Source: Obrimoposthia wandeli
Lineage: Eukaryota
NCBI GenBank assembly: GCA_977020255.1
Contig: CDROCS010003917.1
Coordinates: forward strand, 1 to 64,000
Direction: 5' to 3'
Length of the DNA: 64,000 nucleotides
A program made the translations under genes and the position numbers. The number at the start of each line of letters is the position of its first letter. The stretch's first letter is position 1. Shown here in pieces: positions 12,912-56,103 of this stretch. The notes beneath the pieces were generated by a model, which was not told the origin of the DNA, ran no database searches, and was given only the letters and a program-made list of their open reading frames with translations.

Positions 12912-13724
12912 GTGCTTAAACAAAGAATAATAACCGCCTGTATTTTAGCTCCAATAGTAATAATTGGAATTTTTTTATTGCCCTTAATGGGGGTTGCTTT
13001 ATTTGTCGCTATTGTCGTGCTTATTGGAGCATGGGAGTGGGGGCCTTTTGTAGGATTGAAAAACACTAGCGCTAGGCTAGGGTTGGTAGCGTTAACAGCA
13101 GCATTATTAGCGGTAATTTGGTTTGGTTTTTTTGATCAGGTAATGGCTGTATTTATGCCTTTAGTCGTTTTGGTGTGGGTAGCGGCATTCTATTGGGTGA
13201 AAAGTTATCCATCAAGTGGGATATGGGATAAAAAAATCGTTGGTACAGCGCTTTGTCTTATATTATTAACAACAACATGGTGGAGCTTATTGCAGCTTAA
13301 GTTGCTCTCTACTGAAAACAGTTGGTTGTTGCTTATATTGCTGCTGGTGTGGTCTGCTGATATAGGTGCATATATTGCGGGAAAAACATTTGGTAAAAAA
13401 AAATTGGCACCCAATGTGAGTCCCGGCAAAACAGTAGAAGGTCTTATCGGTGGTGTAATAGCTGCTTGTGTTACTGCTCTAGTATTTAGCTACCTACATA
13501 ATATGCCTGTACATCAAGCTATCTACCTACTTATTTTAGGGGCTGCGATTTCGATGGTTTCAGTGTTAGGTGATCTTTTAGAAAGTATGTTGAAACGCCA
13601 TGCCGGTTTGAAAGATAGTGGGTCGTTACTGCCAGGTCATGGTGGTGTTTTGGATAGAATTGATAGTTTGCTAGCGGCAGCGCCGCTTTTTTTAATTGGT
13701 CTTCAATGGTTTCCGGTGGCTTAA
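12912..13724 (+). CDS. cdsA: Phosphatidate cytidylyltransferase
   Basis: [60 protein letters not shown]. Confidence 0.96.
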
Positions 13725-15089
13725 TTGGAATTTATTCAAACTGTATTATCTTTTGTTGTTACTTTAGGTGTTCTAGTTACTATTCACGAGTGGGGGCATT
13801 TTTATGTCGCTCGCCTTTGTGGTATCAAAGTTTTGCGTTTCTCAGTAGGGTTTGGCAAGGTACTCTATTCTAGAAAAGACCGCCAAGGAACAGAGTTTGC
13901 TTTGGCGTTAATCCCTTTAGGGGGTTATGTGAAAATGCTGGATGAACGCGAAGGGGATGTAAGCCCTGAGCAGAAAGCGATGGCTTTTAACAATAAAAAC
14001 GTATGGCAACGAATCGCTGTCGTGGCAGCAGGGCCGATAGTTAATTTGTTGTTTGCTGTACTAGTTTATTGGGTGCTTTTTGTCAATGGCGTTAGTTCAG
14101 TAGTGCCTATTGTCGGATCTGTTGTAAAAGATTCTATAGCAGAGCAAGTAAATCTGCCGATCGGTGGAGAGATTTTGCAAATTGATGGTCAGAAAATAAA
14201 ATCATGGCAAGATGTTAATTTAGCTTTGGCAAGACGTATTGGCGAGTCTGGTTCTTTGAGTGTCATAATTCAAGGAGGTGAGGGTCAGGATTCTTTTAAG
14301 CGAGATACTTATAGTATAGAGCTAGAAAATTGGTCTGTTGACTTAGAAAAACAAAGCCCAGTTCATAGTATCGGTATATTACCGATGAGGCCTGAAGTTA
14401 AAGCGGTTTTGGCAAGTGTTAGTCCCGATAGTCGTGCAAACCAAGCGGGTCTAAAGCAGCATGACAAAGTATTAGCAATATCCGGACGTGAGATCAGTAA
14501 TTGGCAAGAATTAGTCAGTCTGGTTAAGTCTTCACCAGAGCAATCTCTGCTATTTAAAATTGAGCGTTTGGGTAGTATCAAAGAAATTTCTATAACTCCA
14601 GCTGAAAAGACGCTAAAATCTGGTCAGAAAATTGGCTTTATAGGGGTTGGTGTTGCGGCACCCGAATGGCCTGAACATATGATAAGAAACTATCAATCAG
14701 GTGTAGTAGAAGGTTTTTTCGAAGGCGTGCAAAACACTTGGAAAATGATGAGTTTAACCTTAGATTCAATTAAAAAAATGATTCAAGGGCTCATCTCTGT
14801 TAAAAATCTTAGCGGACCTATTACCATCGCTAAGGTGGCTGCTCAAAGTGCTCAATCAGGTTTTGAAGCTTATCTAAGTTTCCTAGCCTATTTAAGTATT
14901 AGTTTAGGGGTTCTTAATTTATTGCCAATACCCATGCTAGATGGTGGGCATTTATTTTATTATGCAATAGAAGTGATTAAGGGTAAGCCTGTATCTGAGC
15001 GTATACAAGAGATAGGACTAAGGGTTGGCATGGCGTTATTGTTTAGTATGATGGCAATAGCAATGTTTAATGATGTAATGCGATTATAG
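13725..15089 (+). CDS. rseP: RIP metalloprotease RseP (two PDZ domains)
   Basis: HEWGH zinc motif, FSVGFG, AAGP, NLLPIPMLDGGH. TTG start abuts the cdsA stop. Confidence 0.95.
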   Translation: MEFIQTVLSFVVTLGVLVTIHEWGHFYVARLCGIKVLRFSVGFGKVLYSRKDRQGTEFALALIPLGGYVKMLDEREGDVSPEQKAMAFNNKNVWQRIAVVAAGPIVNLLFAVLVYWVLFVNGVSSVVPIVGSVVKDSIAEQVNLPIGGEILQIDGQKIKSWQDVNLALARRIGESGSLSVIIQGGEGQDSFKRDTYSIELENWSVDLEKQSPVHSIGILPMRPEVKAVLASVSPDSRANQAGLKQHDKVLAISGREISNWQELVSLVKSSPEQSLLFKIERLGSIKEISITPAEKTLKSGQKIGFIGVGVAAPEWPEHMIRNYQSGVVEGFFEGVQNTWKMMSLTLDSIKKMIQGLISVKNLSGPITIAKVAAQSAQSGFEAYLSFLAYLSISLGVLNLLPIPMLDGGHLFYYAIEVIKGKPVSERIQEIGLRVGMALLFSMMAIAMFNDVMRL

Positions 15090-15131
15090 TTAAGTGATAC
15101 GCAATTAATGTACTTAATAGAGAAGAAATTC

Positions 15132-17453
15132 ATGAAAAAACAGTTAGGGCTATTACTCGGTTTTTTGTTTTGGGCTAATATTGCTTCAGCGGCATTTCCA
15201 GCGTTTAAAGTGCAGGATATTCGCTTAGAAGGTATACAAAGCGTAGAACCTGGCATCGTTTTTCATAATTTTCCAATAAGTACAGGGGAGTTTATAACTC
15301 AACAAGTACTGAGTTCAGCTGTGAAAAAGCTATATAAATCTGGATACTTTCAGAATATTGAAGTTGAACGTGAAGGTAATGTATTGATCTTGAAAATGGT
15401 GGAAAGGCCCGCTATAGGTAAGATACGCATCAAAGGCAATAAAATAATAAAAACTGAGCAATTGAAAGAAGGTCTAGAAGGCTCTGGCCTAAAAGAAGGT
15501 ATTGTTTTCAAACAATCAGCCTTGGAACGGATTAAAGCGGAATTACAAACTGTTTACGCTTCCCAAGGACGTTATAATGCAAAAATTGATGCTCAAGTTG
15601 AACCTTTGGAAGGTAATAGAATTGCGTTAAATATTACGATTAAGGAAGGAAAAGTTGCCAAGATAAACCATATTAATATTGTAGGCAATAATGTGTATGG
15701 AAATGAAAGGTTGCAAGAACTTTTTACTTCAAAGCTGCCTTCATTTTGGTCTTGGTTTAGTAAGGATGATCGTTACTCTAGAGAAAAACTTGCTGCTGAT
15801 ATAGAAAGAGTACGCTCATTTTACTTGGATCGCGGTTATATAAACTTCAAGGTGACTTCTACACAAGTTTCAATTTCTCCTGATAAGCGTAGCGTGTTTA
15901 TTAGCATCAATGTTAATGAAGGTGCTAAGTTTGAAATCGGTGAAATTTCTATCAAAGGTGAATTAGTAGTGCCTGAAGCTGATTTACGCAACCAAATAAG
16001 CTTTAAGACGGGGGATGTGTTCTCTCGAAAAAATATTGGCGCCTCTAGTGAAAGTATGTTGAATGTCTTGGGGAATAACGGATATATGTTTGCTGATATT
16101 CAGCCTTCCCCAAGCGTTGTAAGTGATACTGTTGTAGATATAAATTTTTATTTAAGGCCAGGTAAGCGTACCTATGTACGAAGAATAAATATTAAAGGTA
16201 ACGAAAAAACGGCAGATTTAGTGATTCGCAGACAGCTTAAGCAGATGGAATCAGCGCTAGCATCAAGTGAAAATATTACTAAATCTAAAGAAAGTTTAGA
16301 TCGATCCGGTTTCTTTTCAGATGTGTCTATTGCAACAACACCTGTTGCGGGTACTGATGATCAGATTGATGTAGATTTAACAGTACAAGAGCGAGCATCA
16401 GGTAATTTCACAGCGAGTATTGGCTTTTCGCAAAGTGAAAACGTAATCTTAGATTTTGGCATTAGCCAAGACAATTTCCTGGGTTCGGGTAACAGAGTTA
16501 GTGCAAATATTACGAAATCAGAGGTGACAAGAGAGCTGCGTTTAGATTATACCAATCCATTTTATACAGTTGATGGAGTGAGTCGTGGATTTGATGCGTA
16601 TTATAGAAAAGAAGATTTTGCCGAAAACTCATCAAGTAAATATAAAATAGATGAATATGGTGGTGGGGTTACTTTTGGCTATCCTATCAATGAATACCAG
16701 AGAGTGTCAGTTCGCTTTGGCGCAGAAGATATCACAGTAGAACCAAACACAATAACCAGTTCAGAAGTCGCTGCATACACTGCTAAGAATGGCGATAATT
16801 TTATCAATACTAATGCGACACTCTATTGGAGTGAAAACAAACTTAATCGTGGTGTTTTTCCAACCAATGGTCGCAAGCAAACGGTCAGTCTAGAAGTTGC
16901 AATTCCAGGAAGTGATTTAAGTTATTATAAGTTGTCTTATAAAGGATCGTGGATTAAATCGATTACGTTCGACGAAAAGTGGTTAGTGGGAGCGAGAGGG
17001 AATTTAGGTTATGCTGATTCCTTAGGGAATAAGGACTTCCCGTTCTTTAAGAACTTCTTTGCAGGTGGTATAGGTTCAATGCGAGGAGTATCGGCAAATT
17101 CATTAGGTCCAAAAGATAGTGAAGTCGACTCAATTGGCGGTAATGTACTAATAACGGGTGGAGCCGATTTAATATTCCCTATACCTGGGATTGATGATGC
17201 TCAAAAGTATCGCACTTCATTATTTGTTGATGCTGGCGGTATCTTCGCCACTGATTGTTTACCCAAAGGTGACTCTACAACCTCTGTTTGTAATGAAGGT
17301 ATAGACTTACAAGATATGAAGTACTCAGCTGGGTTAGGGTTTACTTGGATAACACCATTAGGACCTCTTACCTTCTCCTATGCTAAGCTGCTTAATAAAA
17401 AAGATGGAGATGACGAGAAAACCTTTGATTTTACTTTAGGCGGTACTTTCTAG
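15132..17453 (+). CDS. bamA: Outer-membrane protein assembly factor BamA
   Basis: Signal peptide, POTRA repeats (YASQGRYNA, FYLDRGY, GNEKTADLVIRR), loop-6 motif MRGVSANSLGP, C-terminal FTLGGTF. Start set at ATG 15132. Confidence 0.95.
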   Translation: MKKQLGLLLGFLFWANIASAAFPAFKVQDIRLEGIQSVEPGIVFHNFPISTGEFITQQVLSSAVKKLYKSGYFQNIEVEREGNVLILKMVERPAIGKIRIKGNKIIKTEQLKEGLEGSGLKEGIVFKQSALERIKAELQTVYASQGRYNAKIDAQVEPLEGNRIALNITIKEGKVAKINHINIVGNNVYGNERLQELFTSKLPSFWSWFSKDDRYSREKLAADIERVRSFYLDRGYINFKVTSTQVSISPDKRSVFISINVNEGAKFEIGEISIKGELVVPEADLRNQISFKTGDVFSRKNIGASSESMLNVLGNNGYMFADIQPSPSVVSDTVVDINFYLRPGKRTYVRRINIKGNEKTADLVIRRQLKQMESALASSENITKSKESLDRSGFFSDVSIATTPVAGTDDQIDVDLTVQERASGNFTASIGFSQSENVILDFGISQDNFLGSGNRVSANITKSEVTRELRLDYTNPFYTVDGVSRGFDAYYRKEDFAENSSSKYKIDEYGGGVTFGYPINEYQRVSVRFGAEDITVEPNTITSSEVAAYTAKNGDNFINTNATLYWSENKLNRGVFPTNGRKQTVSLEVAIPGSDLSYYKLSYKGSWIKSITFDEKWLVGARGNLGYADSLGNKDFPFFKNFFAGGIGSMRGVSANSLGPKDSEVDSIGGNVLITGGADLIFPIPGIDDAQKYRTSLFVDAGGIFATDCLPKGDSTTSVCNEGIDLQDMKYSAGLGFTWITPLGPLTFSYAKLLNKKDGDDEKTFDFTLGGTF

Positions 17454-17674
17454 TAATAACTTAAACTATCAGATGCACAATGTAGATTTTTCTGAGCAAT
17501 GCGTATCTGATAATGTGCTGAAGCACTCAGCACTTAATAGTTAAAGCATGTATAGATAGTGCTAGTAAGTGATGACTTTCGAATATAATAAAGCTATCAC
17601 TGTAGCTATTGGATATTTTCTTAAAGGTTATTTTGGATATTTTTGACGTAAGAAATAAATAATAGAGGTGTTAA

Positions 17675-18718
17675 GTGTTCAGTGTTGCTCAGATAGCCAG
17701 TTTTTTGCAAGCAGATGTAATAGGTGATCATAATCTACAAATAACTAATTTAGCGCCTCTTTCTACAGCAGAAGAAGGGGCTATTAGTTTTTGTGCTCAA
17801 AAAAAATCCCTTCCTACTTTACGTACATGCAAAGCTTCAGCAGTTTTGGTCACTGCTACTGAACAAAGCTCGGTTTTAAATAGTGCTATTGTGGTCGATG
17901 ATCCGTACCTAGCATTTGCTAAAATTAGTCAATGGTTTGATTGGCGAACAAAGTTAATAGCGGGTGTTGCTGATAGTAGTAAAATAGCAGAGTCGGCTAA
18001 CGTCGCCAGTTCAGCTCAGGTATGCCATGGTGTTGTGGTAGGAGAAAACAGCTCAATAGGTGAAAACTGTTATATTGGCCCAAACGTAGTGGTAGCGGAC
18101 AATTGTGTTATAGAGGCTAATACCCGTATTGAAGCGGGTGTAGTGTTATACCAAGACGTTAGAATAGGCGAGAATTGTCATATGCATGCTAATGCAGTAA
18201 TAGGTGCAGATGGGTTTGGGTTTGCTAAAAAAGCGGTTGGCTGGCAAAAAATCTGCCAGTTAGGTGGTGTTCGTATTGGTAGAGATGTAGAAATAGGTGC
18301 TTCAACGACGGTTGATCGAGGCGCATTGTCAAATACAATAATAGGCGATGGTGTCAAATTGGATAATCAAATTCAAATTGGACACAATGTCAATCTAGGT
18401 GATCACAGTGCCGTTGCAGCAAGCACTGCGATAGCAGGTAGTACTAACATTGGCGAAAATTGTACTATTGCTGGAATGTGTGGCATTGCAGGTCATATAG
18501 ATATTATTGCCGGCACGCACATCACGGGTATGAGCATGGTGAGCAACTCTATCAAAAAAGCGGGCGTTTATTCTTCAGGAACAGGCACTGAAGAACACCA
18601 CAGTTGGAAGCGTAATGTAGTACGGTTTCGAAGCTTAGATACTATAGCAAAGCGTATAAAAGTATTAGAAGGGGAAGTGAAAGCACTTTCGCTAGAGGAG
18701 AATAAAGGCAAAGTATGA
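17675..18718 (+). CDS. lpxD: UDP-3-O-acylglucosamine N-acyltransferase
   Basis: [10 protein letters not shown], hexapeptide repeats, [20 protein letters not shown]. Confidence 0.95.
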
Positions 18719-19149
18719 TAATGGACATAAATCAAATTCGTGAATATCTACCCCATCGTTACCCATTTTTATTGGTTGATCGTGTTGAAGAGTTAGTGCT
18801 GGGTGAGTCAATTAAAGCCTATAAAAATGTGACCGTAAATGAGCCTTTTTTTAATGGTCATTTTCCGGAGCAGCCAGTTATGCCGGGTGTATTAATCGTC
18901 GAAGCTATGGCGCAGGCAGCTGGGATTTTAGGTTTCAAAACGATGGATAAAACCCCTCAAGACGGTTCAATATATTACTTTGTAGGGTCAGATAAGCTGC
19001 GTTTTAAGAAGCCGGTCGTACCGGGAGATAGGTTAGATTTATTTGCTAAGATAGTTTCTGAAAAACGTGGTATTTGGAAGTTTGAAGTCAAAGCCGAGGT
19101 TGCAGGTAAAATTGTAAGTTCAGCGACTATTCTTTGCGCTGATCGCTAG
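18715..19149 (+). CDS. fabZ: 3-hydroxyacyl-ACP dehydratase
   Basis: [35 protein letters not shown]. Confidence 0.97.
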
Positions 19150-19158
19150 GTATTAACG

Positions 19159-19947
19159 TTGATTGAAACAAATTCATTAATTCATCCCAGTGCAATAATA
19201 GATCCTAGTGCACAGCTAGCTGATAACGTACAAGTAGGACCTTGGAGCATTATAGGTGCTAATGTGCAGATTGATTCAGGCACGATAATTTCCTCCCATG
19301 TAGTGATTAAAGGTGCTTGTAGAATTGGAAAGAATAATCAAATTTTTCAATTTTGCTCTATTGGTGAAGACTGCCAAGACAAAAAATATCAAGGCGAACT
19401 TACCTATTTAGAAATAGGTGACGATAATGTGTTTCGTGAAAGTTGCACTATTCATCGTGGGACTATACAAGACAAGAGTGTTACTAAAATAGGTAGCCGA
19501 AATTTATTTATGGTTAATGTGCATATAGCGCACGATTGCATAATAGGTAACGATATTATTTTGGCGAATAATACAGCCGCTGCTGGGCACGTAATTATAA
19601 ATGATCGGGCAATATTAGGCGGCTTTAGTGCAATACATCAATTTTGCCATATTGGTAATTCTGTAATGTGTGGTGCCGGCACTGTTATTTTAAAAGATAT
19701 ACCCGCTTTTGTAATGGCCAGTGGTAACCCTGCTAAGCCTTTTGGCATTAATAGTGAAGGGTTAAGAAGGCAAGGTTATTCAGCTGCATTAATTACTGAA
19801 ATTAAGCGCGCTTACAAAATAGTATACCGCCAACAACTTTCAATTGAAGATGCGATATCTAAGTTACAAGCAATGGCAGAAAAGCATGACGCTATTCAGC
19901 TTCTTACTCAATCTTTAGTGCAATCTAATCGCGGTATTATTCGCTAG
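19159..19947 (+). CDS. lpxA: UDP-N-acetylglucosamine acyltransferase
   Basis: IHPSAIIDP, IGEDCQDKKY, RESCTIHRGT, HIAHDC, HQFCHIG. Confidence 0.96.
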   Translation: MIETNSLIHPSAIIDPSAQLADNVQVGPWSIIGANVQIDSGTIISSHVVIKGACRIGKNNQIFQFCSIGEDCQDKKYQGELTYLEIGDDNVFRESCTIHRGTIQDKSVTKIGSRNLFMVNVHIAHDCIIGNDIILANNTAAAGHVIINDRAILGGFSAIHQFCHIGNSVMCGAGTVILKDIPAFVMASGNPAKPFGINSEGLRRQGYSAALITEIKRAYKIVYRQQLSIEDAISKLQAMAEKHDAIQLLTQSLVQSNRGIIR

Positions 19948-21131: not shown

Positions 21132-21150
21132 ATAAATTAAAGAGAATTTA

Positions 21151-21744
21151 ATGTTAGATTTAGAGCAATATAAATATATGCTTATGCTAGCGGGTTGCGA
21201 TGAAGTTGGTCGTGGTCCATTAATAGGAGATGTAGTCTCTGCTGCCGTTATCCTCGACCTTGATAGACCTATTGTGGGTTTAGCTGACTCTAAAAAACTT
21301 AGCGAAAAGAAGCGAAACTATCTCTATCAGCAAATTGTAGAAAATGCCCTATGTTATGCAGTAGGTAGAGCTAGCCCTACTGAAATTGATCAAATCAATA
21401 TATTACAGGCGAGCATGCTTTCAATGAAGCGAGCTATTGAAGGGTTAAGTTTGCAGCCCCAGATGGTGTTAGTGGACGGTAATCGATGCCCTGAAATAGC
21501 TTTTCCTTGTGCCGCGATAGTAAAAGGGGATGCAAAAGTTGCAGCGATCAGCGCAGCTTCTATTGTTGCCAAAGTAGTGCGTGATAAAGAAATGGTGGCG
21601 CTACATGAAGCACATCCAGAATATGGTTTTGATCGCCATAAAGGTTACCCAACTAAAGAGCATATGGCAGCCTTGGCAACTTATGGCCCATTAGCAATGC
21701 ATCGTAAGAGTTTTAAGCCAGTACGTGTATTGCTAGAGCGCTAG
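21151..21744 (+). CDS. rnhB: Ribonuclease HII
   Basis: [40 protein letters not shown]. Confidence 0.96.
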
Positions 21745-21819
21745 GTTTTAAAGTTATAAAATTAGAAATAGCATAATGATTAGTTTAAAAATGATACCAA
21801 GTACGGAATTAAAATAAGT

Positions 21820-29978: not shown

Positions 29979-31274
<1,296 letters not shown>

Positions 31275-31439: not shown

Positions 31440-31724
31440 ATGTATCGATACTTACTGTTAGCACTGTTAATTCTGTTATCTGCCTTGCAGTATCGTATTT
31501 GGTTTGGTGAGGCAAATCGCTTTGAGTTAACAGCCTTGCGCAATGAGATTGAGCAAAAAAACATAGCTAATGACCAGTTACTATTACGTAATTATCAACT
31601 TGAAGCAGAGGTTAAAGATTTGCGTAAAGGTTTAGTTGCGATAGAAGAAAGAGCGAGAAGTGAATTGGGGATGGTTAAACCCGATGAAACTTTTTATCAG
31701 TTGATAATTGAATCAGATCAGTAA
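31440..31724 (+). CDS. ftsB: Cell division protein FtsB
   Basis: TM helix with LQYRIWFG, coiled coil, IEERARSELGMVKPDETFY. Confidence 0.93.
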   Translation: MYRYLLLALLILLSALQYRIWFGEANRFELTALRNEIEQKNIANDQLLLRNYQLEAEVKDLRKGLVAIEERARSELGMVKPDETFYQLIIESDQ

Positions 31725-31756
31725 GGCTATCTAAATGCCCAAGGTTACCGTTAAAT

Positions 31757-32806
31757 ATGAATAGCTACCCAACAGATTATCAATATCTCTATGGAAAACC
31801 TAATTGCAGTGCTGAAATCAGAGCATGTAATGCCGATTTTCAAGTGACAGAGCTTCCATCATTTACCTTAGATGGAGAAGGTGAGCACTGGTATATCAAA
31901 ATACTGAAAAGCGGTGAGAATAGCGATTGGGTAGCTAAACTACTCGCTCAATTTTTTAAAGTAAGCAGCAAGGAAATTGGCTACGCAGGTAAGAAAGATC
32001 GTCATGCAGTTACTGAACAGTGGTTCAGCGTTTGTTTGCCAGGTGTTAAAACTATCGATTTAAAAGGGTTTAATTCTGATACTGTGCAGGTTTTAGATAT
32101 CCAAAAGCATAGTAGGAAATTACGAACGGGTGCATTGAAAGGGAATAAGTTTAAAATTCGCCTAAAAAATGTCAGCGATGACGAGGAGCTTGCTAAGCGT
32201 TTAGCATTGATCTCTCAAGGCGTACCTAATTATTTTGGAGAGCAACGCTTTGGCTTTGGTGGTGCTAATATATCGCGTGGCATATCCTTGCTAAAAGAAG
32301 AGTTTAAAGAGCGTAATAGAAATAAAAAGGGACTATATATTTCTGCAGTGCGTTCTTGGTTCTTCAATCATTTATTATCTAAGCGAATTGAAGAGAAGCG
32401 CTGGTTAGAAATAGTTGCTGGTGATGTTGTCATGCTAGAGGGCAGTAAAAGTCATTTTTTAGTTGATGATATGGCTGCGATTAAGCAAAGAATGACAGAT
32501 TTAGATTTGCATTTAACAGGCCCTTTATGGGGGCGAGGTAGATCGATAGTAACAGAGCAAGCTGAAGCGTGGGAATTGAGTCATCTAGAAGAATATACTG
32601 CTATCACTGAACGGCTTGAGCATATGGGTTTAAGTCAAGAGCGCCGTTCTATCCGCTTATTAGCTAATAACTTAACCTCCGTTTGTGAAGAGTCAGGAAC
32701 CTGGTTACTATCTTTTGAATTACCACCAGGTGCATTTGCAACAAGCGTCTTACGAGAATTGTGTCAATATTCAAATGCAACTACTACCGATAGTGAAGCG
32801 TCATGA
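31757..32806 (+). CDS. truD: tRNA pseudouridine(13) synthase
   Basis: DFQVTE, GEGEH, YAGKKDRHAVTEQW, GNKF, VPNYFGEQRFG, LPPGAFAT. Confidence 0.95.
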   Translation: MNSYPTDYQYLYGKPNCSAEIRACNADFQVTELPSFTLDGEGEHWYIKILKSGENSDWVAKLLAQFFKVSSKEIGYAGKKDRHAVTEQWFSVCLPGVKTIDLKGFNSDTVQVLDIQKHSRKLRTGALKGNKFKIRLKNVSDDEELAKRLALISQGVPNYFGEQRFGFGGANISRGISLLKEEFKERNRNKKGLYISAVRSWFFNHLLSKRIEEKRWLEIVAGDVVMLEGSKSHFLVDDMAAIKQRMTDLDLHLTGPLWGRGRSIVTEQAEAWELSHLEEYTAITERLEHMGLSQERRSIRLLANNLTSVCEESGTWLLSFELPPGAFATSVLRELCQYSNATTTDSEAS

Positions 32807-33552: not shown

Positions 33553-34223
33553 TGGCTGAGCAATTTAACCTGCAAGGTAGTGGCATGACATCGCAGCGAG
33601 CCAGAGATAGATTGGTAAACAATCTAAAAGAGAAGGGAATTGAAAACGTTAATGTGTTAAATGCGATTAAAAACACACCACGACATATATTTATAGATGA
33701 AGCTTTAGCTCACGGGGCATATGAAAATAACGCCTTACCAATAGGTTACAATCAGACAATATCTCAGCCTTATATCGTCGCTAAGATGACAGAGCTTTTA
33801 TTAGCCAAAAAGCCGTTACACAAAGTGTTAGAAGTCGGCACTGGTTCTGGTTATCAAACGGCTATTTTGTCGCAGCTAGTGGATAAAGTGCATTCAATAG
33901 AACGTATTAAACCTTTGCAAGAAAGGGCGGCAATACGATTGCAGGCACTGAATATTAGTAATGTAGATTTGCAACACACTGATGGTTGCATGGGTCTAGA
34001 GAAATATGCACCGTACGATGCAATACTCGTCACAGCTGCGCCGGATGAAGTGCCACCTGAATTGCTGGAACAATTAGCTATTAATGGCATTATGGTCATT
34101 CCTGTTGGTGGTAACCAAAACCAACAGCTGAAATTAATTGAAAAAAAATCCGCCGGTAATTTTTCTGTGAAAATAGTAGAATCAGTCAATTTTGTGCCAT
34201 TACTGGCTGGTGTTATCAATTAA
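33552..34223 (+). CDS. pcm: Protein-L-isoaspartate O-methyltransferase
   Basis: [48 protein letters not shown] start at 33552 overlaps the surE stop. Confidence 0.95.
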
Positions 34224-34278
34224 ATTCATTCAAAACCATATTATACTTAATAGCACGTTAATAGACGTAGAGGTTAAT

Positions 34279-35205
34279 TTGCAGCGATCGAGAAAAGATT
34301 TAATTAGTTTGTTTTCCAAAGGATGCATGATGGGAGCTGCGGACGCAGTACCTGGTGTTTCCGGTGGCACTATTGCTTTTATAACGGGTATTTACCAAGA
34401 GCTTATTCTGTCTCTTAGCCGTCTGGGCCCAAAAGTGCTGCAGATATTATACAAGCAAGGGTTCTCACAAGCTTGGTTATACGTCAATGGAAACTTCCTC
34501 GTTGTTCTATTGCTGGGGATGCTAACCAGTATTTTATTACTATCAAACATAGTATTGTTTTTATTACAAAATCAGCCTGAAATGTTGTGGGGATTTTTCT
34601 TCGGTTTGATTTGTGTTTCAACAGTACTTCTAGCTAAAACTATTACCCGCTGGGATGTGTTTAGTGTCTTGTTCTTTATACTAGGTACCTTTAGTTCTTA
34701 TATGCTGACGACATTAGGAGCATCGGTTTTAGAGGTATCAAATACCAATATTTTTTTTGCTGGTATGCTAGCAATTTGTGCCATGATATTACCGGGGATC
34801 TCCGGGTCATTTATACTACTATTGCTAGGTTTATATAGTCATATTTTAGGCTCAATAAAGAGTTTAGATATAGTGACACTAGCGATCTTTGCGGGTGGTT
34901 GTATTAGTGGGCTACTATGTTTTTCTAAGGTACTTAACTGGTTGTTTAGTTGCCATAAAAATACTACCGTTGCATTGTTAACAGGTTTCTTATGCGGATC
35001 ATTGAATAAAGTATGGCCATGGAAAGAAACTTTAACAACAAGAATTAACAGTCATGGTTTGCAGGTTGCGGACTTACAACAAAATGTATCACCGTTTAAC
35101 TATCAACAAGTCACAGGTGGTGAGCCTCAATTATTGATGGTGTGTATATTAGCGTTACTAGCTGTAGTTTTAGTCTTCTCTCTTGAAAAGATGAATAAAG
35201 TATAA
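34279..35205 (+). CDS. DUF368 family membrane protein (undecaprenyl-phosphate translocase family)
   Basis: KGCMMGAADAVPGVSGGTIAFITGIY and MILPGISGSFILLLLGLY repeats. Start set at TTG 34279 after an AGAGGT RBS. Confidence 0.9.
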   Translation: MQRSRKDLISLFSKGCMMGAADAVPGVSGGTIAFITGIYQELILSLSRLGPKVLQILYKQGFSQAWLYVNGNFLVVLLLGMLTSILLLSNIVLFLLQNQPEMLWGFFFGLICVSTVLLAKTITRWDVFSVLFFILGTFSSYMLTTLGASVLEVSNTNIFFAGMLAICAMILPGISGSFILLLLGLYSHILGSIKSLDIVTLAIFAGGCISGLLCFSKVLNWLFSCHKNTTVALLTGFLCGSLNKVWPWKETLTTRINSHGLQVADLQQNVSPFNYQQVTGGEPQLLMVCILALLAVVLVFSLEKMNKV

Positions 35206-36600: not shown

Positions 36601-36877
36601 TACCAAGATGTATCTCAGAATATAGAGCGGCTATATCGCTGGAGCGTTAAGTGGAATTCAGCTCAGGTTATGGATCTCTATTTGTGTTCTCAATCTTGGT
36701 TGATTGGAAAACCATGACACGTGAAGTCATGAATCAAGCTCTAACTATTAGATTATCTATTAGAGTCTAATGGTTATTTGAGAAGAGCTGACGACTAGCC
36801 TAAGCGGTGCCTCAGAACCGCTATATAACATATCGTGCTAATGTGCATGTACTGGTGTGAAGTTTTCAAACTGTTTT

Positions 36878-38449
36878 TTATGCTTTCAGTAAAGACAGAA
36901 AGTCCTCAATAGCTTGATCGTTATCAGTATTAACTCTATCTTGGTAAAGCGATTCCGCATCAGTTAAAGGCTGTTGATAACTTAATTGATGAGATAGCCT
37001 ATCTAAAGAAAACTTGCTGTCAGTTGATCGTGTATTGATACCGCGTACTAACCTGGCTTCCATTAATTTATCATCGCATTCACAACTGATTATTTTAATA
37101 TTCACGTTGAGCTGCTTTGCAATATCGAGATACTTTTGGCGGAAATGTTGTTTCAAGAAAGTGCCATCGACCAGCACAGTGTAACCTTGCTTTAACAACT
37201 GCTCTGTTAAGATAATTAGATGCTGAGAAAGACGTGCATTAATTTCAGGACTGTGCAAATCAATATTCTTTCCTTTCTTTTGTAGTTCTTTATGTAATCT
37301 ATTTCGCTCAGTTTCAGAGCGAATACGGATGGCATCAATTGATTCAATAATTTTGCGGCTTAAATGGCTTTTTCCACTCCCAGAAAGACCATGCATTATT
37401 AATAATCTGGCAGTCGGTTTTTTTTGGTAACTTTGGGTTAGTTTTAAGTATTTAATAAATGTAGCATGATTCGCTTGTTCACCTAAAGTCGCAACTTTAG
37501 CGCGGACCATGGACCTAAAGCTTTTATAGAAATTAAGTAGCAATAAACACTGGTAGTCTCCGGTTATTTCTAAATAGCGGTTGAGTGCTAAATTTGCCCA
37601 TTTATGTTTATTGTTAGCTTCTAAATCCATCAATAAAAAAGCCAGATCTGAGCAAGTGTCAATCCATCTAAATTGCAAATTAAACTCAATGCAATCAAAT
37701 AAGCGTAGTTTATCTTGGTAACAAGTGACATTGCCCAAGTGTAAATCACCATGGCATTCTCTGATAAACCCTTGTTGCTTTCTATCTTTGAAAACATCTT
37801 GCAATGCATTGTATTGGACTGTGGTTTGGGCGTATAAGGTGCTTAATTCTCGTTTATCTAGTGGGTCCTGGCAGAAATCTAGCGTGTGCAGAAAATTATC
37901 AGCAACTAATTGCCAAATGTTTTCAGCCTCTCCCCAAGGGCTATTAGAAGCAACTGTAGGCAGTTGTAAATGAAATTGTGCTAGTTGTATCGCTAACTCG
38001 TCAATCCATTGCGTTTTGAATTGATTTACTTGCAATAAATGATCCAAGCCCGCTTCTGGATCAAACTGCTGCATTCGCACTGCAAATTCTAATACAGGTT
38101 CGTTGTCGGCGGGTGTGATTTGTGCACTGATGTCATTGTTATTGACACTTCGATAGTCAGTCGTCGAAACTTGCGGGGTTTCAACGGCGCCGGTAATGAT
38201 CACAACTGCTTGGTATATATCTGGAGCTAAGCGTTGATTGAGGCGCAATTCTTCCTCACAGCAAAACTGGCGCTTTTGTAAACTGGAAAAATCTAGAAAA
38301 CCAAAATTTAGAGACTTTTTAAGTTTGTAAGCATATTGGCCTGTTAATAATACCCAAGATACTTGTGTTTCAATTACTTTAATAGGCAGAGTAACACTAT
38401 GTGGATAGCAAGCAGGGTTTTGCAATGCTTCGATTAAACGCGCTGACAT
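36878..38449 (-). CDS. Bifunctional aminoglycoside-phosphotransferase-like kinase / P-loop (AAA_33) kinase, function unknown
   Basis: IETQVSWVLL, AYKLKK, RECHGDLHLGN, FDCIEFN in the N-terminal domain. Walker A GLSGSGKS and VDGTFL in the C-terminal domain. Confidence 0.85.
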   Translation of the reverse strand: MSARLIEALQNPACYPHSVTLPIKVIETQVSWVLLTGQYAYKLKKSLNFGFLDFSSLQKRQFCCEEELRLNQRLAPDIYQAVVIITGAVETPQVSTTDYRSVNNNDISAQITPADNEPVLEFAVRMQQFDPEAGLDHLLQVNQFKTQWIDELAIQLAQFHLQLPTVASNSPWGEAENIWQLVADNFLHTLDFCQDPLDKRELSTLYAQTTVQYNALQDVFKDRKQQGFIRECHGDLHLGNVTCYQDKLRLFDCIEFNLQFRWIDTCSDLAFLLMDLEANNKHKWANLALNRYLEITGDYQCLLLLNFYKSFRSMVRAKVATLGEQANHATFIKYLKLTQSYQKKPTARLLIMHGLSGSGKSHLSRKIIESIDAIRIRSETERNRLHKELQKKGKNIDLHSPEINARLSQHLIILTEQLLKQGYTVLVDGTFLKQHFRQKYLDIAKQLNVNIKIISCECDDKLMEARLVRGINTRSTDSKFSLDRLSHQLSYQQPLTDAESLYQDRVNTDNDQAIEDFLSLLKA

Positions 38450-38812
38450 ATAGACCCATACAAAAAAAAGTAACTTAATGAAGTCTTTGCACTAAACAGA
38501 AAAGGTCAGTGTTACAAAGGAAAAAAAGCTTAAACCAAGTCTTATAAATAAGTTAGGATTAATAATGCACCTTTTAATGGGTGTAGGGCTTGTTTTTAAC
38601 GTTGAATCAGTGACGCAGTAAATGTGCAAAGGTCTTATTGTAACTAAAGGAGAAAAGCGCTGATATTAAGCTTTATGCTGATATTCACGACAGGTTTTTT
38701 CTGCTCATTGCTGTAAAGAAGCGCATTATACTAGAAAATCGCGTTGAGCTCTATAAAGCTGGATCTTGGAATTGTACAATAGCGGCAAAATCAAATGATA
38801 AAGCTGGAATCC

Positions 38813-46025: not shown

Positions 46026-46213
46026 TATTGCCTAATACTGGTAATTAGTGGAGGGATGATTAGCTGCCCGTATTTTGTTTTAGTGATATAAAAGTGCTTT
46101 AGACGATGTTTCATCTGTAAGTTGATCCAGATTAAAATATTTATGAGGTATGTAAAAGAACTAATTGGTTGATTTGCTGGTTGTTTGGGAAATGGCTATC
46201 GCTAAAGAGTTTA

Positions 46214-46246: not shown

Positions 46247-46283
46247 CTCAATTCAGAAAACCTAATTGAATTGAGATAAAGTA

Positions 46284-46625
46284 GTGTCCGAATTTGAAGA
46301 TCCGCTAAAATTTAGCAACTCAGCTGTGGCTAAAGTTAAAGTCCTTATTGAAGAAGAAGAAAACGATGATTTGAAACTGCGCTTATATATCACCGGTGGA
46401 GGGTGTGCAGGTTTCTCCTATGGTTTCAGTTTTGTAGAAGAGGTAGCTGAAGACGATACTATTATTACCAAATCAGGGGTTAGTTTAGTGGTAGATGCTA
46501 TGAGTTTGCAGTATCTTACCGGCTCTGAAGTCGATTACAGAGAAGGTCTGCAAGGATCGCAGTTTTTAGTAAATAACCCAAATGCTACAACCACTTGTGG
46601 CTGTGGATCTTCTTTTTCGTTATGA
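46284..46625 (+). CDS. erpA: Fe-S cluster insertion protein ErpA
   Basis: [54 protein letters not shown]. Confidence 0.93.
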
Positions 46626-46646
46626 GTTAAGTGCTTGAATCATGGC

Positions 46647-49521: not shown

Positions 49522-49691
49522 AAGATAGTGCCTTTAAATACCAGTTTATAATGAGTTGTCCTGCATGAGTAAGCTCTTAAAATCCTTTTGAGACAATGAA
49601 CATAAGCGTAACTATTTATTGTTCATTGACAGTAGTGCCGCTAGAATAGCTGCATTTTAACTAAATCACAATATAGGCTGTTGAGCAATAT

Positions 49692-51029
49692 ATGAGTAAG
49701 CAAACACTGTTAGAAGAACTTAGTAGTCGCGGATTGATCGCACAGATGACTAGCGAAGAAGAATTAGCCCAGCATCTAGAAAATCAAAGTGTCACATTGT
49801 ATTGCGGATTCGATCCTACAGCAGATAGTCTACATATAGGCAGTTTAGTTCCCCTGTTAACTTTAAAACGTTTCCAGTCTTTCGGTCACAAGCCGCTGGC
49901 GTTAGTTGGCGGAGCGACAGGTTTAATAGGCGATCCTAGCTTTAAAGCGCAAGAGCGCAAGCTTAATGATGATACAACTGTTTCAAATTGGGTTGAAAAA
50001 ATTAAGCAGCAAGTAAGTCAATTTATTGATTTTAATGACAGTGAGAGCAGTGCGCAGGTCGTTAATAATTTAGATTGGACTAAAGATATGGATGTGCTTT
50101 CGTTCTTGCGAGATGTCGGTAAACATTTCTCTATCAACCAGATGATAGCCAAAGAATCGGTAAAACAGCGTATAGATCGCGAAGGTGAAGGGATTTCCTT
50201 TACTGAATTTACCTATATGATTTTACAGTCATACGATTTTCAGCAATTGAATAAAGCTTATGACTGTACTTTGCAGATTGGCGGGTCGGACCAATGGGGG
50301 AATATTACCGGCGGCACAGAGTTAACACGACGCATGAACGGTAAAAAGGCTTACGGATTGACGCTGCCGTTAATTACTAAATCTGATGGCACCAAATTTG
50401 GTAAAACTGAAAGTGGCACTATCTGGTTGTCAGCTGACAAAACTTCTCCTTACGCATTTTATCAATTTTGGATAAACGCCGCTGATGCAGATGTTTATAA
50501 CTTCTTACGTTATTTTACTTTTTTAAGTGTAGATGAAATAGCGGCAATTGAAGAGCAAGATAAATTAGCGCAAGGCAAGCCGCAAGCACAGGCGGTTTTG
50601 GCGCGAGAAGTGACAAAATTGGTGCATGGAGAAGCCGGATTAGACGCTGCTGAGCGCATTTCTAATGCGCTGTTTTCAGGTAGTTTTGATGCGTTGGGAG
50701 AAGGAGAGTTTGCTCAGTTAGCGCATGATGGGTTGCCTAGTTGTCACTTACCAACAGCGTATTCAAAAACAAGCAATGTAGATGATATGTTGATGAGTAT
50801 AAAAGATGTTCCTTTGACTTCGTTATTAGTTGATATTGGAGTTGGCTTTACTTCTGGGAAACAAATCAAAGAGGCTTTGTCGCGAAATGCTTTAACTGTA
50901 AATGGTAAGGCGTATGGGTTAGAGCATAATATGAAAGCCTGTGAAGTATTTAATCCAGAGCATGCAAAATTTTCGGCGTACTTTCTTGTCAAAGTAGGAA
51001 AGAAAAAAAGCTGTATAATAACTATCTAA
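49692..51029 (+). CDS. tyrS: Tyrosine--tRNA ligase
   Basis: YCGFDPTADSLHIGS, QIGGSDQWGNI, KFGKT, C-terminal S4-like domain. Confidence 0.97.
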   Translation: MSKQTLLEELSSRGLIAQMTSEEELAQHLENQSVTLYCGFDPTADSLHIGSLVPLLTLKRFQSFGHKPLALVGGATGLIGDPSFKAQERKLNDDTTVSNWVEKIKQQVSQFIDFNDSESSAQVVNNLDWTKDMDVLSFLRDVGKHFSINQMIAKESVKQRIDREGEGISFTEFTYMILQSYDFQQLNKAYDCTLQIGGSDQWGNITGGTELTRRMNGKKAYGLTLPLITKSDGTKFGKTESGTIWLSADKTSPYAFYQFWINAADADVYNFLRYFTFLSVDEIAAIEEQDKLAQGKPQAQAVLAREVTKLVHGEAGLDAAERISNALFSGSFDALGEGEFAQLAHDGLPSCHLPTAYSKTSNVDDMLMSIKDVPLTSLLVDIGVGFTSGKQIKEALSRNALTVNGKAYGLEHNMKACEVFNPEHAKFSAYFLVKVGKKKSCIITI

Positions 51030-51043
51030 TGCAACTTAGTTGT

Positions 51044-51071
51044 ACCAACCTTGACCTGCATCAAGGTTGGT
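51044..51071. other. Perfect 11-bp hairpin after tyrS
   Basis: ACCAACCTTGA-CCTGCA-TCAAGGTTGGT, with no U-tract on the + strand. Confidence 0.6.
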
Positions 51072-51270
51072 CCTCCCGATGTTCCTCTCATATGTGCTCT
51101 TCACGCGAATATTTAATAACTGAAAGCAACCCTTGAAATGTTATTAATGCAAACTGCAAATTGTTTAAAACAATGACAATATCAATATAGCAGCCATTTC
51201 CTAATTATAAATTAACGCTATTAGCTAAAAAAGCACAGAACACTAGTGGTGTTTATGGCTAACAGTGGCG

Positions 51271-51276
51271 TATAAT
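51271..51276 (+). promoter_or_regulatory. Consensus -10 hexamer upstream of ndk
   Basis: TATAAT about 64 nt upstream of the ndk ATG. I did not identify a -35. Confidence 0.45.
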
Positions 51277-51339
51277 GCAGAGTTTTTTACGCCTAGCAGA
51301 TGCTTGGCAAACTTTAATTTAAATAATGGGAAATAAATC

Positions 51340-51747
51340 ATGGCAATTGAGCGCACGCTTTCAATTATCAAACCAGATGCTGTAGCTAAAAATGTTATCG
51401 GCCAAATCATAACACGCTTTGAAGGCGCGAATCTTAAAGTTGTTGAATTACAACTAAAAAGCTTGAGCAAAGCAGAAGCTGAAGGTTTTTATGCTGAGCA
51501 CAGTGAGCGTCCTTTCTTCGCAGATCTAGTATCATTCATGACTTCAGGTCCTGTTGTAGTACAAGTTTTAGAAGGCGAAAACGCAGTATTAACTAACCGT
51601 GACTTAATGGGTGCTACTAACCCTAAAGAAGCTGATGCTGGCACTATTCGCAGCGATTTCGCTGAGTCTATCGACGCTAACGCTGTACACGGTTCGGATT
51701 CTGTTGAATCTGCTACACGTGAAATTGCTTACTTTTTCGCTAAGTAA
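51340..51747 (+). CDS. ndk: Nucleoside diphosphate kinase (short C-terminus)
   Basis: [39 protein letters not shown]. Confidence 0.97.
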
Positions 51748-51877
51748 GTAACATGAGGTCTTTGCGTATAACTGCGTAAAGATCTCGTATTGATACTAAT
51801 TTCAATACGTATATAACAGTACTAATGCGCCTAAATAAACGCTAAGTACTGGCTTAATTAAAGAGAATAAAATCCCC

Positions 51878-52987
51878 ATGACACAAGCATCAAAAACTAA
51901 CCTACTCGGTATGTCTCCTAAGCAACTGGCCGAATACTTCCAAGCAATAGGGGAAAAGCCATTTAGAGCGACGCAAGTACTGAAGTGGATGCACCAGCAC
52001 GGTGCTGAAAGTTTTGATGAAATGACTAATATTAGTAAATCACTACGTGAAAACCTTAAAGAGCAAGCGGAAATCCGTGAGCCAGAAGTGGTAAGCCAAG
52101 ATATATCTAAAGACGGTACACGTAAATGGGTTATTAGAGTAGACGGTGGATCCTGCGTAGAGACAGTGCTAATACCAGAGGGAGACAGAGGTACACTATG
52201 TGTATCTTCGCAAGTAGGTTGTTCATTGAACTGCAGTTTTTGTTCAACAGGAAAACAAGGGTTTAATCGCAATTTAAGTGCTGCAGAAATTATTGGGCAA
52301 GTGAGAATTGCGATTAAATCATTTGGTCCTATGGACCCTGCTAATAAGCGGATGGTTACTAACGTAGTAATGATGGGAATGGGCGAGCCGCTGATGAATT
52401 TTGAGCGGGTTGTTGCCGCTATGACTTTGATGATGGAAGATAACGCTTATGGCCTTTCTAAAAGAAGAGTCACTTTAAGTACAGCAGGAGTAGTACCTGC
52501 CATCGATAAGTTAGGTGACGTGATCGATGTATCTTTGGCCGTTTCATTACATGCGCCCAATGATGAGTTACGGGATGAATTGGTCCCTATTAATAAAAAA
52601 TATCCAATTAAAGAACTAATTGCCGCTTGTAACCGCTATTTAGAAAAATTAGACGATAAGCGCGTTATCACTATTGAATATACTATGATGGCTGGCATCA
52701 ACGACTTTCCTGAACATGCTGTGCAACTGGCGAAACTGTTAAAGAAAGTGCCTTGCAAGCTCAATATAATACCTTTTAATCCCTTTCCTAATTCTGGTTA
52801 TGAAAGACCTAAAGCGGCGGCCATTGAGATTTTTAAAAACGCGATGCACAAAGCTGGTATACGTACCACTGTTAGACGTACCAGAGGGGAAGAAATTGAT
52901 GCGGCTTGTGGTCAATTAGTCGGTATGGTTGACGATAGAACGAGAAGAACAAGTAAGTTAATTCCCATCGTGCAGCAGGCCAGTTAA
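51878..52987 (+). CDS. rlmN: 23S rRNA/tRNA m2A methyltransferase (radical SAM)
   Basis: [39 protein letters not shown]. Confidence 0.97.
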
Positions 52988-53034
52988 TCTAAACGGGTTT
53001 TATTTTAGATCGATAATAAGGAGTTACTAAAGAA

Positions 53035-53802
53035 GTGCGCAAGTTATTTTATGTATTCAAATTTTTGATGATGTCAGTCTTGCTCACGGCTTGTGCTATC
53101 GGTGCTCCTGATCCAAACGAAGTAGATAAAAGTGAAAAAGCTAAAAAATCTACTGAAGTCGCCATCGAATATTTTAAGTCTGGCGATAATGTCAGCGCGC
53201 GAAATTGGTTACAAAAAGCGATTGAATATGACAGCACATACGCTAGGGCCTATTCAGTATTAGGGACAGTATTCCAATCTGAAAAAGAATGGGAACTAGC
53301 AGAGAAATATTTTAGAAAGTCGATACTAGTAGAGCCGGGCTCTGCCATGTTTCATAATAATTATGGAGCTTTCCTCTACCAAAGAAAAAAGTATGCTCAA
53401 GCTTGCAAAGAGTTGGAAATAGCAACAAAAGATCCTTTTTACAATTTAAGAGCTAATGCCCTAAATAATTTAGGACGCTGTTTCGAAGCTTTAAATCAGC
53501 AGACAAAAGCGACAGAAGCTTTCCAGCGTTCAGTCAATTTAGGTGGTAGAGATCCCGCGGCATTATTAAATTTAGCTAAGAAAATGTTGAATTCAGGTGA
53601 AACCTTTAAATCTAATACAAAATACCAAGAGTTTTTGCAGCTAGTATCAGAGAACAAAGCGCAACATAGCGCCGAAAGTTTGATACTAGGGGTAAAATTA
53701 GCACGTAAAAGTGGTAATCTATCCGAAGTTGTAACTTATTCATTATTATTAGAAAATTTATTTCCAAATCATTATAAAAAATATAAGGAGTCCGCTCAGT
53801 GA
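53035..53802 (+). CDS. pilW: Type IV pilus biogenesis/stability TPR lipoprotein PilW (PilF)
   Basis: Lipobox LTAC, TPR repeats, HNNYGAFL, DPFY. Located between rlmN and rodZ. Confidence 0.85.
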   Translation: MRKLFYVFKFLMMSVLLTACAIGAPDPNEVDKSEKAKKSTEVAIEYFKSGDNVSARNWLQKAIEYDSTYARAYSVLGTVFQSEKEWELAEKYFRKSILVEPGSAMFHNNYGAFLYQRKKYAQACKELEIATKDPFYNLRANALNNLGRCFEALNQQTKATEAFQRSVNLGGRDPAALLNLAKKMLNSGETFKSNTKYQEFLQLVSENKAQHSAESLILGVKLARKSGNLSEVVTYSLLLENLFPNHYKKYKESAQ

Positions 53803-54827
53803 GTAGTATATCTGACGAAGTGTTAGAAACTGAAGATCGTAGTTCTCCGGGAAGTCGTTTACAAAAAGCTAGGGAAATGCTTGGTATCAGCCAAAAATCT
53901 CTTGCCGACGATTTGTATCTACCACGTAACTATATATTGTGGATAGAAGAAGGAGCTTATGAAAAATTACCTAGCATGGTTTTTTGTAGAGGTTACATCA
54001 GAGCCTACGCAAAATTGGTCAACGAGAACGGAGAAGAGTTAATAGAGCTGTTAGACAATATATATGGCAATCAAAATATCAAAGCGCCATTAATGTCAGT
54101 CTCCAAAATTAACGAACAGGTAAAAGTTGGCGATCCCATCATGAAATGGTCTAGCCTATTATTTATTATCATTCTGTGTGGATTAGTTTTTTGGTGGTGG
54201 AAAACACAGTATGGATTAAATGCGCCATTCTTATCTTCCCAAGAGCCTATTGCAGTTGAAACAGCCAATGGAAATGAATTAGTTTTACCTTCTCTGGATG
54301 ACACAGCTGTCATTGAAACTAGTAATGCGCAATTAATAACAGAAAATACTACGGATAGTGTACAACCGTCCGCTACATCAGAGTTGGAAACGTCCAATAA
54401 CGACCAAAGCGAAATAGTAAACAATGGTAACGGTATTGAGCTTGCTTTAAATGTAGTTGACGAAAAAGCTGAAGCTGAACAGTTAATCGCCCTGGAAAAA
54501 ATAGTAGCTGAAATTGAGCCCGAAGCCGTTGAAACTGTAACACAAGCCGTTGCTACTAACGAACTAGCGCCGGCTACAGTAGATGCGAAACTGCTGCAAA
54601 TAGCATTTAATAATGAGTGTTGGGTAACGATTAAAGATGCTCGCGGTAGAGTATTATTTAATGGCATTAAAAAATCAGGCCAACTATTGTCGCTCAGTGG
54701 AGATGCACCATTAAATGTGTCGATCGGACGTGTAGACAGTGTGTCAAAAATTACCTTTGGTGGCGCTGATATTGATCTCAATGATCTGGGTCGTAACAAC
54801 ATTGCAAACTTTAAGCTACCCCTTTAA
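53799..54827 (+). CDS. rodZ: Cytoskeleton protein RodZ
   Basis: HTH (PGSRLQKARE..FCRGYIRAYAKL), one TM segment, acidic linker, C-terminal ECWVTIKDARG domain. Confidence 0.9.
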   Translation: MSSISDEVLETEDRSSPGSRLQKAREMLGISQKSLADDLYLPRNYILWIEEGAYEKLPSMVFCRGYIRAYAKLVNENGEELIELLDNIYGNQNIKAPLMSVSKINEQVKVGDPIMKWSSLLFIIILCGLVFWWWKTQYGLNAPFLSSQEPIAVETANGNELVLPSLDDTAVIETSNAQLITENTTDSVQPSATSELETSNNDQSEIVNNGNGIELALNVVDEKAEAEQLIALEKIVAEIEPEAVETVTQAVATNELAPATVDAKLLQIAFNNECWVTIKDARGRVLFNGIKKSGQLLSLSGDAPLNVSIGRVDSVSKITFGGADIDLNDLGRNNIANFKLPL

Positions 54828-54843
54828 TAATTGGTAAAATAAA

Positions 54844-56103
54844 TTGTCAAAACTTCAAGCGATCAGAGGAATGAATGACATTCTTCCTGAACAATCAGCT
54901 ACATGGCAGTATTTAGAAGAAAAATTTCAGAGTGTTGTGGCAAACTACAGCTATAACGAAATAAGAACACCTGTTGTCGAAAATATAGAGTTGTTTAACC
55001 GTTCGATTGGTGAAGTAACTGATATTATAGAAAAAGAAATGTACTGCTTTGAAGATCGCAATGGCGAACGTCTAGCTATGCGCCCTGAAGGGACTGCAAG
55101 TATTGTAAGAGCAGGCATTGAGCACGGCTTATTGTTCAATCAAACTCAGCGCTTATGGTATCGTGGACCGATGTTCCGCTATGAAAAACCGCAAAAAGGA
55201 CGCTATCGCCAATTTCATCAAATGGGTGTGGAGACTTTTGGAATGGCCGGTGCCGACATAGATGCTGAAGTTATTTTATTATCCGCAGCGCTTTGGCGTT
55301 CTTTAGGGATACTTGATGTACTAACACTTGAACTTAATTCATTAGGAAGCAACGAAGCGCGTGCCGCATATCGTGCTGCACTAGTGGTATATTTAAGTGC
55401 GATTGAAGATCAGCTAGATGAAGATAGCAAAAAACGATTACATACTAATCCATTGCGCATACTAGACAGTAAAGAACAGAGCACTCAATTACTGCTTAAT
55501 GATGCTCCAAGCTTAGTGGACTATTTAGATGATGATGCCAAACAGCATTTTGCAACGCTAACAGGTATTTTAGATAGTGCTGGAATCAGTTATATTGTTA
55601 ATCCGCGATTGGTAAGAGGGCTGGATTATTACAATAAAACAGTGTTCGAGTGGACGACTGATAAACTAGGCGCACAGGGAACAATATGTGCCGGTGGTCG
55701 TTATGACGGTATGGTGGGTCAGTTAGGAGGCAAACCAACGCCTGCTGTTGGTTTTGCGATGGGTGAAGAAAGATTATTGTTGTTGCTAGAAACATTGAAT
55801 AAAGTACCGCCAGCGATAAAGCAACGCTATGATTTATATTTGGCCGCCGAAGATAAAGGTATTCAATCACAATTGATTATTGTTGCAGAAAAGTTACGTG
55901 AACTATCACCTAACTTACAAATCAGAACGCACTGCGCAGGCTTAAAGAATATTTTAGCTAAAGCTCGCCAAAGTGGAGCTGAAAAAATAGCTTTAGTGAA
56001 ATTGAATCACGATGGTGGCTTATCTGCAACTTTATGGTGTGGTGAAGAAGTTCAGCAAAACATCAGCATTGAGCAGCTAGCTTCTTATTTAATAGCTAAA
56101 TAA
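54844..56103 (+). CDS. hisS: Histidine--tRNA ligase
   Basis: [47 protein letters not shown] start. Confidence 0.97.

Follow-up and report, generated by a model that had tools for sequence, protein, structure and literature searches.

Use of mevalonate for isoprenoid synthesis is already on record for marine bacteria of the family Oceanospirillaceae (Nitrincolaceae in the taxonomy database GTDB), to which the organism investigated here adds a further member. We have examined a 64-kb stretch of DNA (the window; positions 1 to 64,000 of contig CDROCS010003917.1, assembly GCA_977020255.1, filed under Obrimoposthia wandeli; 39.5% GC, zero N) in which four genes of the alternative methylerythritol phosphate (MEP) pathway, dxr, ispD, ispF and ispG, are missing from three conserved gene blocks. 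In a classification of 4,249 species by isoprenoid pathway (PMC13001223, J Bacteriol 2026), Table S1 lists as 'MEV', not 'Both', Marinobacterium aestuarii, M. iners, M. sediminicola, Amphritea atlantica, A. japonica, Aliamphritea ceti, Aliamphritea hakodatensis, Neptunomonas and Nitrincola, and lists Marinomonas as 'MEP'. The mevalonate gene cluster of 'Candidatus Liberibacter solanacearum' has been compared with those of Marinobacterium jannaschii, M. litorale and M. stanieri, with which it shares gene order and more than 50% identity, and ancient horizontal transfer of the cluster was discussed (PMC5291501, PLoS One 2017). Liberibacter differs in being an alphaproteobacterial obligate parasite; the reported kinship of the two clusters suggests that operons of this type have spread horizontally. 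Mevalonate-pathway genes are also carried by the Legionellales, gammaproteobacteria of a different order, in which Coxiella is classed as MEV while Legionella is without phosphomevalonate kinase and mostly without hydroxymethylglutaryl-CoA (HMG-CoA) synthase, its pathway not being counted as complete (PMC13001223).

The mevalonate-only genera of the Oceanospirillaceae (Marinobacterium, Amphritea, Aliamphritea, Neptunomonas and Nitrincola) share with the window its conserved gene blocks and an empty ftsB-truD junction, and the window nests among them; Neptunomonas japonica shares the empty dxr junction as well. The window differs in that, together with the metagenome-assembled genome (MAG) 'Oceanospirillaceae bacterium 9NakV-11' (GCA_036960485.1), it forms a lower-GC, uncultured subclade beside the Osedax symbiont Rs2, a subclade listed in neither PMC13001223 nor PMC5291501. 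Our literature search on mevalonate in Osedax symbionts, MED92 or the Oceanospirillales yielded no specific result, none of the papers found treats the trait in the Osedax-symbiont-related clade, and two taxonomy papers containing in-silico chemotaxonomy leave the isoprenoid pathway unmentioned.

MEP genes are missing from three conserved blocks of the window

Genes were named from NCBIfam scans, with Pfam used for open reading frames (ORFs) left unnamed by NCBIfam, and conclusions on gene absence cover the 64 kb of the window. Compared with Escherichia coli K-12, which represents the MEP layout, the flanking gene order is shared at all three blocks (frr..uppS-cdsA-rseP-bamA; ftsB..truD-surE-pcm-nlpD; ndk-rlmN-rodZ..hisS-yfgM-bamB-der), but the dxr found between frr and uppS, the ispD-ispF pair between ftsB and truD and the ispG between rodZ and hisS in E. 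coli have no counterpart in the window. In the first block, frr, encoding ribosome recycling factor (11552..12109, + strand; TIGR00496, 217.9 bits), is separated by 45 bp from uppS, encoding undecaprenyl-diphosphate synthase (12155..12910, + strand), which is followed after 1 bp by cdsA (12912..13724, + strand; NF008635, E 2.5e-65), the stop codon of which adjoins the start of rseP (13725..15089, + strand; NF008046, 487 bits) with a gap of 0 bp. The earlier note on this DNA had given the dxr site as lying between cdsA and rseP, which is its position in Pseudomonas. That junction is indeed empty, but the position occupied in E. coli is the one between frr and uppS; both the Pseudomonas-type and the E. 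coli-type positions are thus empty. In the second block, a spacer of 32 bp (31725..31756) separates ftsB (31440..31724, + strand; NF002058, 113 bits) from truD (31757..32806, + strand; NF002153, E 3e-110) where E. coli, like the outgroup loci described below, carries ispD-ispF. In the third, 16 bp (54828..54843) lie between rodZ (53799..54827, + strand; NF008109, E 9e-41) and hisS (54844..56103, + strand; TIGR00442, 457.7 bits), the site of ispG in E. coli. The three empty junctions are each bordered by full-length, in-frame genes and the gaps, as read from the sequence, are of 0–45 bp, which leaves no space for gene remnants. The absence of the four genes from intact blocks with tight junctions, as the earlier note had reported, is therefore borne out by the profile scans, the junction sequences and the tblastn search that follows.

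No homologue of E. coli Dxr, IspD, IspF, IspG, Dxs, IspE or IspH was detected anywhere in the 64-kb window by tblastn at E≤10; the sole match returned at this threshold, 42 residues inside rseP, was dismissed as spurious. Similarly, NCBIfam and Pfam identified no MEP or mevalonate enzyme among 50 of the larger ORFs of the window, Pfam recognised no isoprenoid enzyme in the ORFs without an NCBIfam name, and a search with motifs of GHMP-kinase, HMG-CoA reductase and HMG-CoA synthase gave nothing relevant in ORFs 150 residues long or longer in the window and 80 related loci.

Consumption of isoprenoid precursors is retained. As the earlier note had stated, uppS is kept and intact, matching TIGR00055 with 300.6 bits (cut-off 109.55) over profile positions 1–228 of 228, and its product uses up isopentenyl diphosphate (IPP) and farnesyl diphosphate. 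A second user of the isoprenoid carrier lipid, a PopT/VCA0040-like (DUF368) polyprenyl-phosphate transporter, is encoded between pcm and nlpD, four genes downstream of ftsB (34192..35205, + strand; NF052564, 391.8 bits, which is under the cut-off of 400). Of the 73 family loci compared below, 67 have this gene and the other six all end at or before pcm; its counterparts in 9NakV-11 (locus L087) and N. japonica (L088) match PF04018.

A side observation concerns erpA, which is kept in the window at 46284-46625 (NF010147, 181.8 bits). In E. coli, the essential clients of the A-type Fe-S carrier ErpA are IspG and IspH; beside the retention of erpA, the usual ispG site in the window is empty.

The empty junctions are shared across the family

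Relatives of the window were collected with a TruD-based scan using one genome per species, which returned 80 loci. Locus L151, the record of which bears the label of a human-gut metagenome contig, was excluded from every comparison. The best TruD match was 9NakV-11 with 92% identity, followed by the Osedax symbiont Rs2 and its kin (70–74%) and by Neptunomonas, Pontibacterium, Marinobacterium, Amphritea, Neptuniibacter and Nitrincola (∼47–56%). In a tree built on four proteins (PyrG+Eno+TruD+SurE), the window pairs with 9NakV-11 (L001), to which it is 96% identical over the four proteins, and this pair falls inside a clade formed with Osedax Rs2, L025 and L004 that is sister to Neptunomonas, with support values of 99–100 in the Shimodaira-Hasegawa-like approximate likelihood ratio test (SH-aLRT). 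The Rs2 clade and Neptunomonas are in turn nested among Amphritea, Neptuniibacter and Marinobacterium. By these protein comparisons, the window is assigned to an uncultured marine bacterium of the Oceanospirillaceae. No exact match to its enolase was found in public assemblies.

The distance from ftsB to truD is 3–163 bp in all 73 family loci, comprising Marinobacterium, Amphritea, Neptuniibacter, Neptunomonas, Nitrincola, Pontibacterium and the Osedax symbionts. Both M. jannaschii (L059) and M. stanieri (L028), the species whose mevalonate clusters were described in 2017, are among these tight-junction loci. Only five outgroup loci (L074, L076-L079), belonging to Thalassotalea, Plasticicumulans, two Contendobacter MAGs and one proteobacterial MAG, contain 1.2–2.8 kb between ftsB and truD, and tblastn places ispD and ispF there. 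The mapping of the loss across relatives that the earlier note proposed thus reveals a family-wide tight junction, which corresponds to one change on the four-protein tree (SH-aLRT 100). The dxr junction could be followed upstream of dnaE in 9NakV-11 (L087) and in the cultured, free-living N. japonica DSM 18939 (L088), both of which have frr-uppS-cdsA-rseP-bamA without dxr. Combined, these observations indicate that the MEP gene gaps are old and common to the whole family for at least two clusters, ispD/F in 73 loci and dxr in two relatives. The replacement is consequently not an event of the window's own lineage, as the earlier note had it.

The ispG junction behaves differently. The sole close relative recovered for it is L089, a metagenome contig with 75% HisS identity in which rodZ lies directly before hisS. 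Approximately 20 other gammaproteobacterial metagenome contigs, however, have the order rlmN-pilW-(rodZ)-hisS-yfgM-bamB-der without ispG (L115, L116, L120, L128-L131, L138-L141, L147, L149, L150, L155 and L162-L166), and none of the 17 placed on the tree is kin of the window. As unrelated lineages also lack ispG at this site, the junction alone says little and is only weakly diagnostic of MEP loss.

Probable replacement of the MEP pathway and rival explanations

We consider it very probable that the ancestor of the family exchanged the MEP pathway for a mevalonate (MVA) operon and then lost its MEP genes, and that the organism of the window inherited that state. The ancestor would have gained the operon, probably by horizontal transfer, after which the redundant dxr and ispD-ispF, and probably ispG as well, would have been deleted cleanly from conserved housekeeping clusters. 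In the descendant represented by the window, IPP and dimethylallyl diphosphate (DMAPP) would be produced from acetyl-CoA via HMG-CoA synthase, HMG-CoA reductase, mevalonate kinase, phosphomevalonate kinase, diphosphomevalonate decarboxylase and IPP isomerase, the genes for which, we infer, form an MVA operon carried elsewhere in the genome. IPP and DMAPP would then feed UppS for synthesis of the C55 carrier lipid, as well as the prenyl chain of the quinone, and the UppS product may be recycled by the PopT-like transporter. The switch to mevalonate suggested in the earlier note is thus very probably right, because the window nests in a family with cultured genera listed as mevalonate-only and a cluster described in 2017.

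Several observations weigh against this replacement scenario. No MVA gene was seen for the organism of the window, for 9NakV-11 or for the Osedax symbiont Rs2, and the 64 kb inspected, in which no homologue of ispE, ispH or dxs was detected either, are only a part of the genome. In addition, the GC content of the subclade formed by the window and 9NakV-11 is 39.5–39.8%, versus 43–58% for the same region elsewhere in the family, and rpoS and skp are missing at their usual sites in both members, a pattern that would to some extent fit a reduced, dependent lifestyle. Such a lifestyle bears on the possibility that the organism lacks both pathways and obtains its isoprenoid precursors from a host or neighbours, in the manner of some Rickettsiales. 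The nearest named relatives of the window include endosymbionts of the Osedax bone-worm, and three broken genes in the first 10 kb of the window, together with the lowered GC and the absence of rpoS and skp at canonical sites, could be read in the same direction. However, the empty junctions are older than the subclade and are found in free-living cultured genera, the breaks in glnD and rpsB match indel differences to contigs of the public run X1 and so look like consensus errors more than decay, and the housekeeping genes that make up the remainder of the window are intact. Host scavenging, which the earlier note had offered as an alternative, is therefore very unlikely, as the layout is shared by free-living cultured relatives. 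There is likewise a very slight chance that the low-GC subclade, unlike the rest of the family, is host-associated and in an early stage of genome reduction, with isoprenoid precursor synthesis lost or remodelled, so that it would be without a complete MVA operon and dependent on a host or partner.

Relocation of the MEP genes, with the organism still relying on the MEP pathway alone or together with MVA, would equally empty the three junctions, and the ∼20 unrelated contigs without ispG beside hisS, which indicate that ispG does leave this site in some lineages, together with the restriction of the window to 64 kb of the genome, allow for it. Set against this, four genes are gone from conserved positions at once, and cultured relatives classed as MEV and not as 'Both' (PMC13001223) have the same empty junctions for dxr and ispD/F. 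The argument of the earlier note that independent relocation of all four genes is unlikely is weak with regard to ispG, the empty junction being shared by unrelated lineages, and rests mainly on dxr and ispD/F. Relocation is considered highly improbable. An assembly artefact, in which genes were dropped or contigs mis-joined, has next to no likelihood. Indel errors are present in the first 10 kb of the assembly, but the junction flanks are full length and in frame, the dxr and ispD/F junctions both recur in one independent MAG and in the genome of one isolate, another 71 public loci have the tight ispD/F junction, and metagenome contig L089 has the empty ispG site.

With replacement in the family ancestor as the favoured explanation, annotation of the organism as a user of mevalonate is appropriate, and it is predicted to be insensitive to fosmidomycin. 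In quality checks of bins from the family, missing dxr, ispD, ispF and ispG should not be counted as genome incompleteness. A whole family in which MEP genes have been cut cleanly out of two or more conserved clusters is a textbook case of pathway replacement, and the relationship reported between the cluster of Marinobacterium and the clusters of Liberibacter and predatory bacteria has some evolutionary interest. Both are already on record, and beyond correct annotation the finding matters little.

Gene content of the window and peculiarities of the subclade

The window contains two runs of housekeeping genes, both in the usual gammaproteobacterial order. The first comprises map, rpsB, tsf, pyrH, frr, uppS, cdsA, rseP, bamA (15108..17453, NCBIfam), lpxD, fabZ, lpxA, lpxB and rnhB and continues with dnaE, accA, tilS, pyrG, eno (29982..31274, NCBIfam), ftsB, truD, surE, pcm, the gene for the PopT-like transporter and nlpD. 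Within this run, lpxD-fabZ-lpxA-lpxB-rnhB-dnaE-accA-tilS-pyrG were named solely from Pfam labels in the 9NakV-11 locus, with which the window is collinear. The second run, past a less conserved stretch, comprises ndk, rlmN, pilW, rodZ, hisS, yfgM, bamB and der; yfgM (56205..56861) has no NCBIfam match, is recognised by Pfam as TPR_21 and was named by position as in E. coli.

Two features are shared by the window and 9NakV-11. In 68 of the 70 family loci that reach that far, rpoS follows nlpD, but it does so in neither of these two. In the window (region 36601-38794), an ORF of 523 residues with an AAA_33/zeta-toxin-like kinase domain (36878-38449, − strand) is located before mrcB, and the counterpart region of 9NakV-11 (L001 14608-16555) contains the same kinase-domain ORF before mrcB. 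Likewise, skp (OmpH) is present between bamA and lpxD in N. japonica and absent there from both members of the subclade, which have a spacer of ∼220 bp (window 17454-17674; 9NakV-11, L087 5645-5855). The Osedax-symbiont-related clade as a whole is on a long branch of the four-protein tree.

The broken genes near the start of the window are patB (402-1336), glnD (4164-7202) and the essential rpsB (8954-9790), each interrupted by frameshifts, with the change of frame in rpsB located near 9464-9530. Contigs of the public run X1, compared over the broken-gene region 4100-9900, show small indels relative to the window at 4733-4747, 5183, 5239 and 9482-9526. As these differences fall at the same places, the breaks seem to stem from consensus errors or strain mixing in the assembly and not from decay of the genes.

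Mevalonate genes encountered in other organisms

Searches for mevalonate genes led to other organisms. The sole viral contig matching a degenerate DNA motif for diphosphomevalonate decarboxylase was L169, a giant-virus MAG contig from IMG/VR (GVMAG, 25% GC), in which a single protein of 811 residues (2959-5394) fuses three enzymes of the lower mevalonate pathway, a diphosphomevalonate decarboxylase, an animal-type phosphomevalonate kinase (PF04275) and a mevalonate kinase-type GHMP-kinase. A word-based protein search with the decarboxylase domain of this fusion gave 4160 matches; among the 120 matches listed were Bacteroidota, Bdellovibrionota and others, and the family of the window was absent there. 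Similarly, a profile of the proteobacterial-type decarboxylase gave predominantly Bdellovibrio among the matches listed, the family of the window again being absent from these. Two divergent decarboxylase matches, P0095 and P0119, were rejected, as their contigs come from low-GC bacteria that are not kin of the window and share only ∼50% HemL identity with it.

Among plasmids, tblastn detected only Legionella adelaidensis. In this replicon, filed as a plasmid (L170 7983-10075), diphosphomevalonate decarboxylase and mevalonate kinase genes adjoin ftsB, with eno and fni nearby, and the ftsB neighbourhood is where MEP users keep ispD/F. Two further operons were observed in metagenome contigs. A Bdellovibrio-like contig (L171 4740-9858) carries IDI2-HMGR-(299 aa, no Pfam match)-MVD-GHMP kinase, and low-GC marine contigs (L174 6872-11194) carry HMGR-(282 aa, no Pfam match)-MVD-GHMP kinase-NUDIX. 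The Pfam-less gene, in third place in the first operon type and in second place in the other, may encode an unrecognised kinase.

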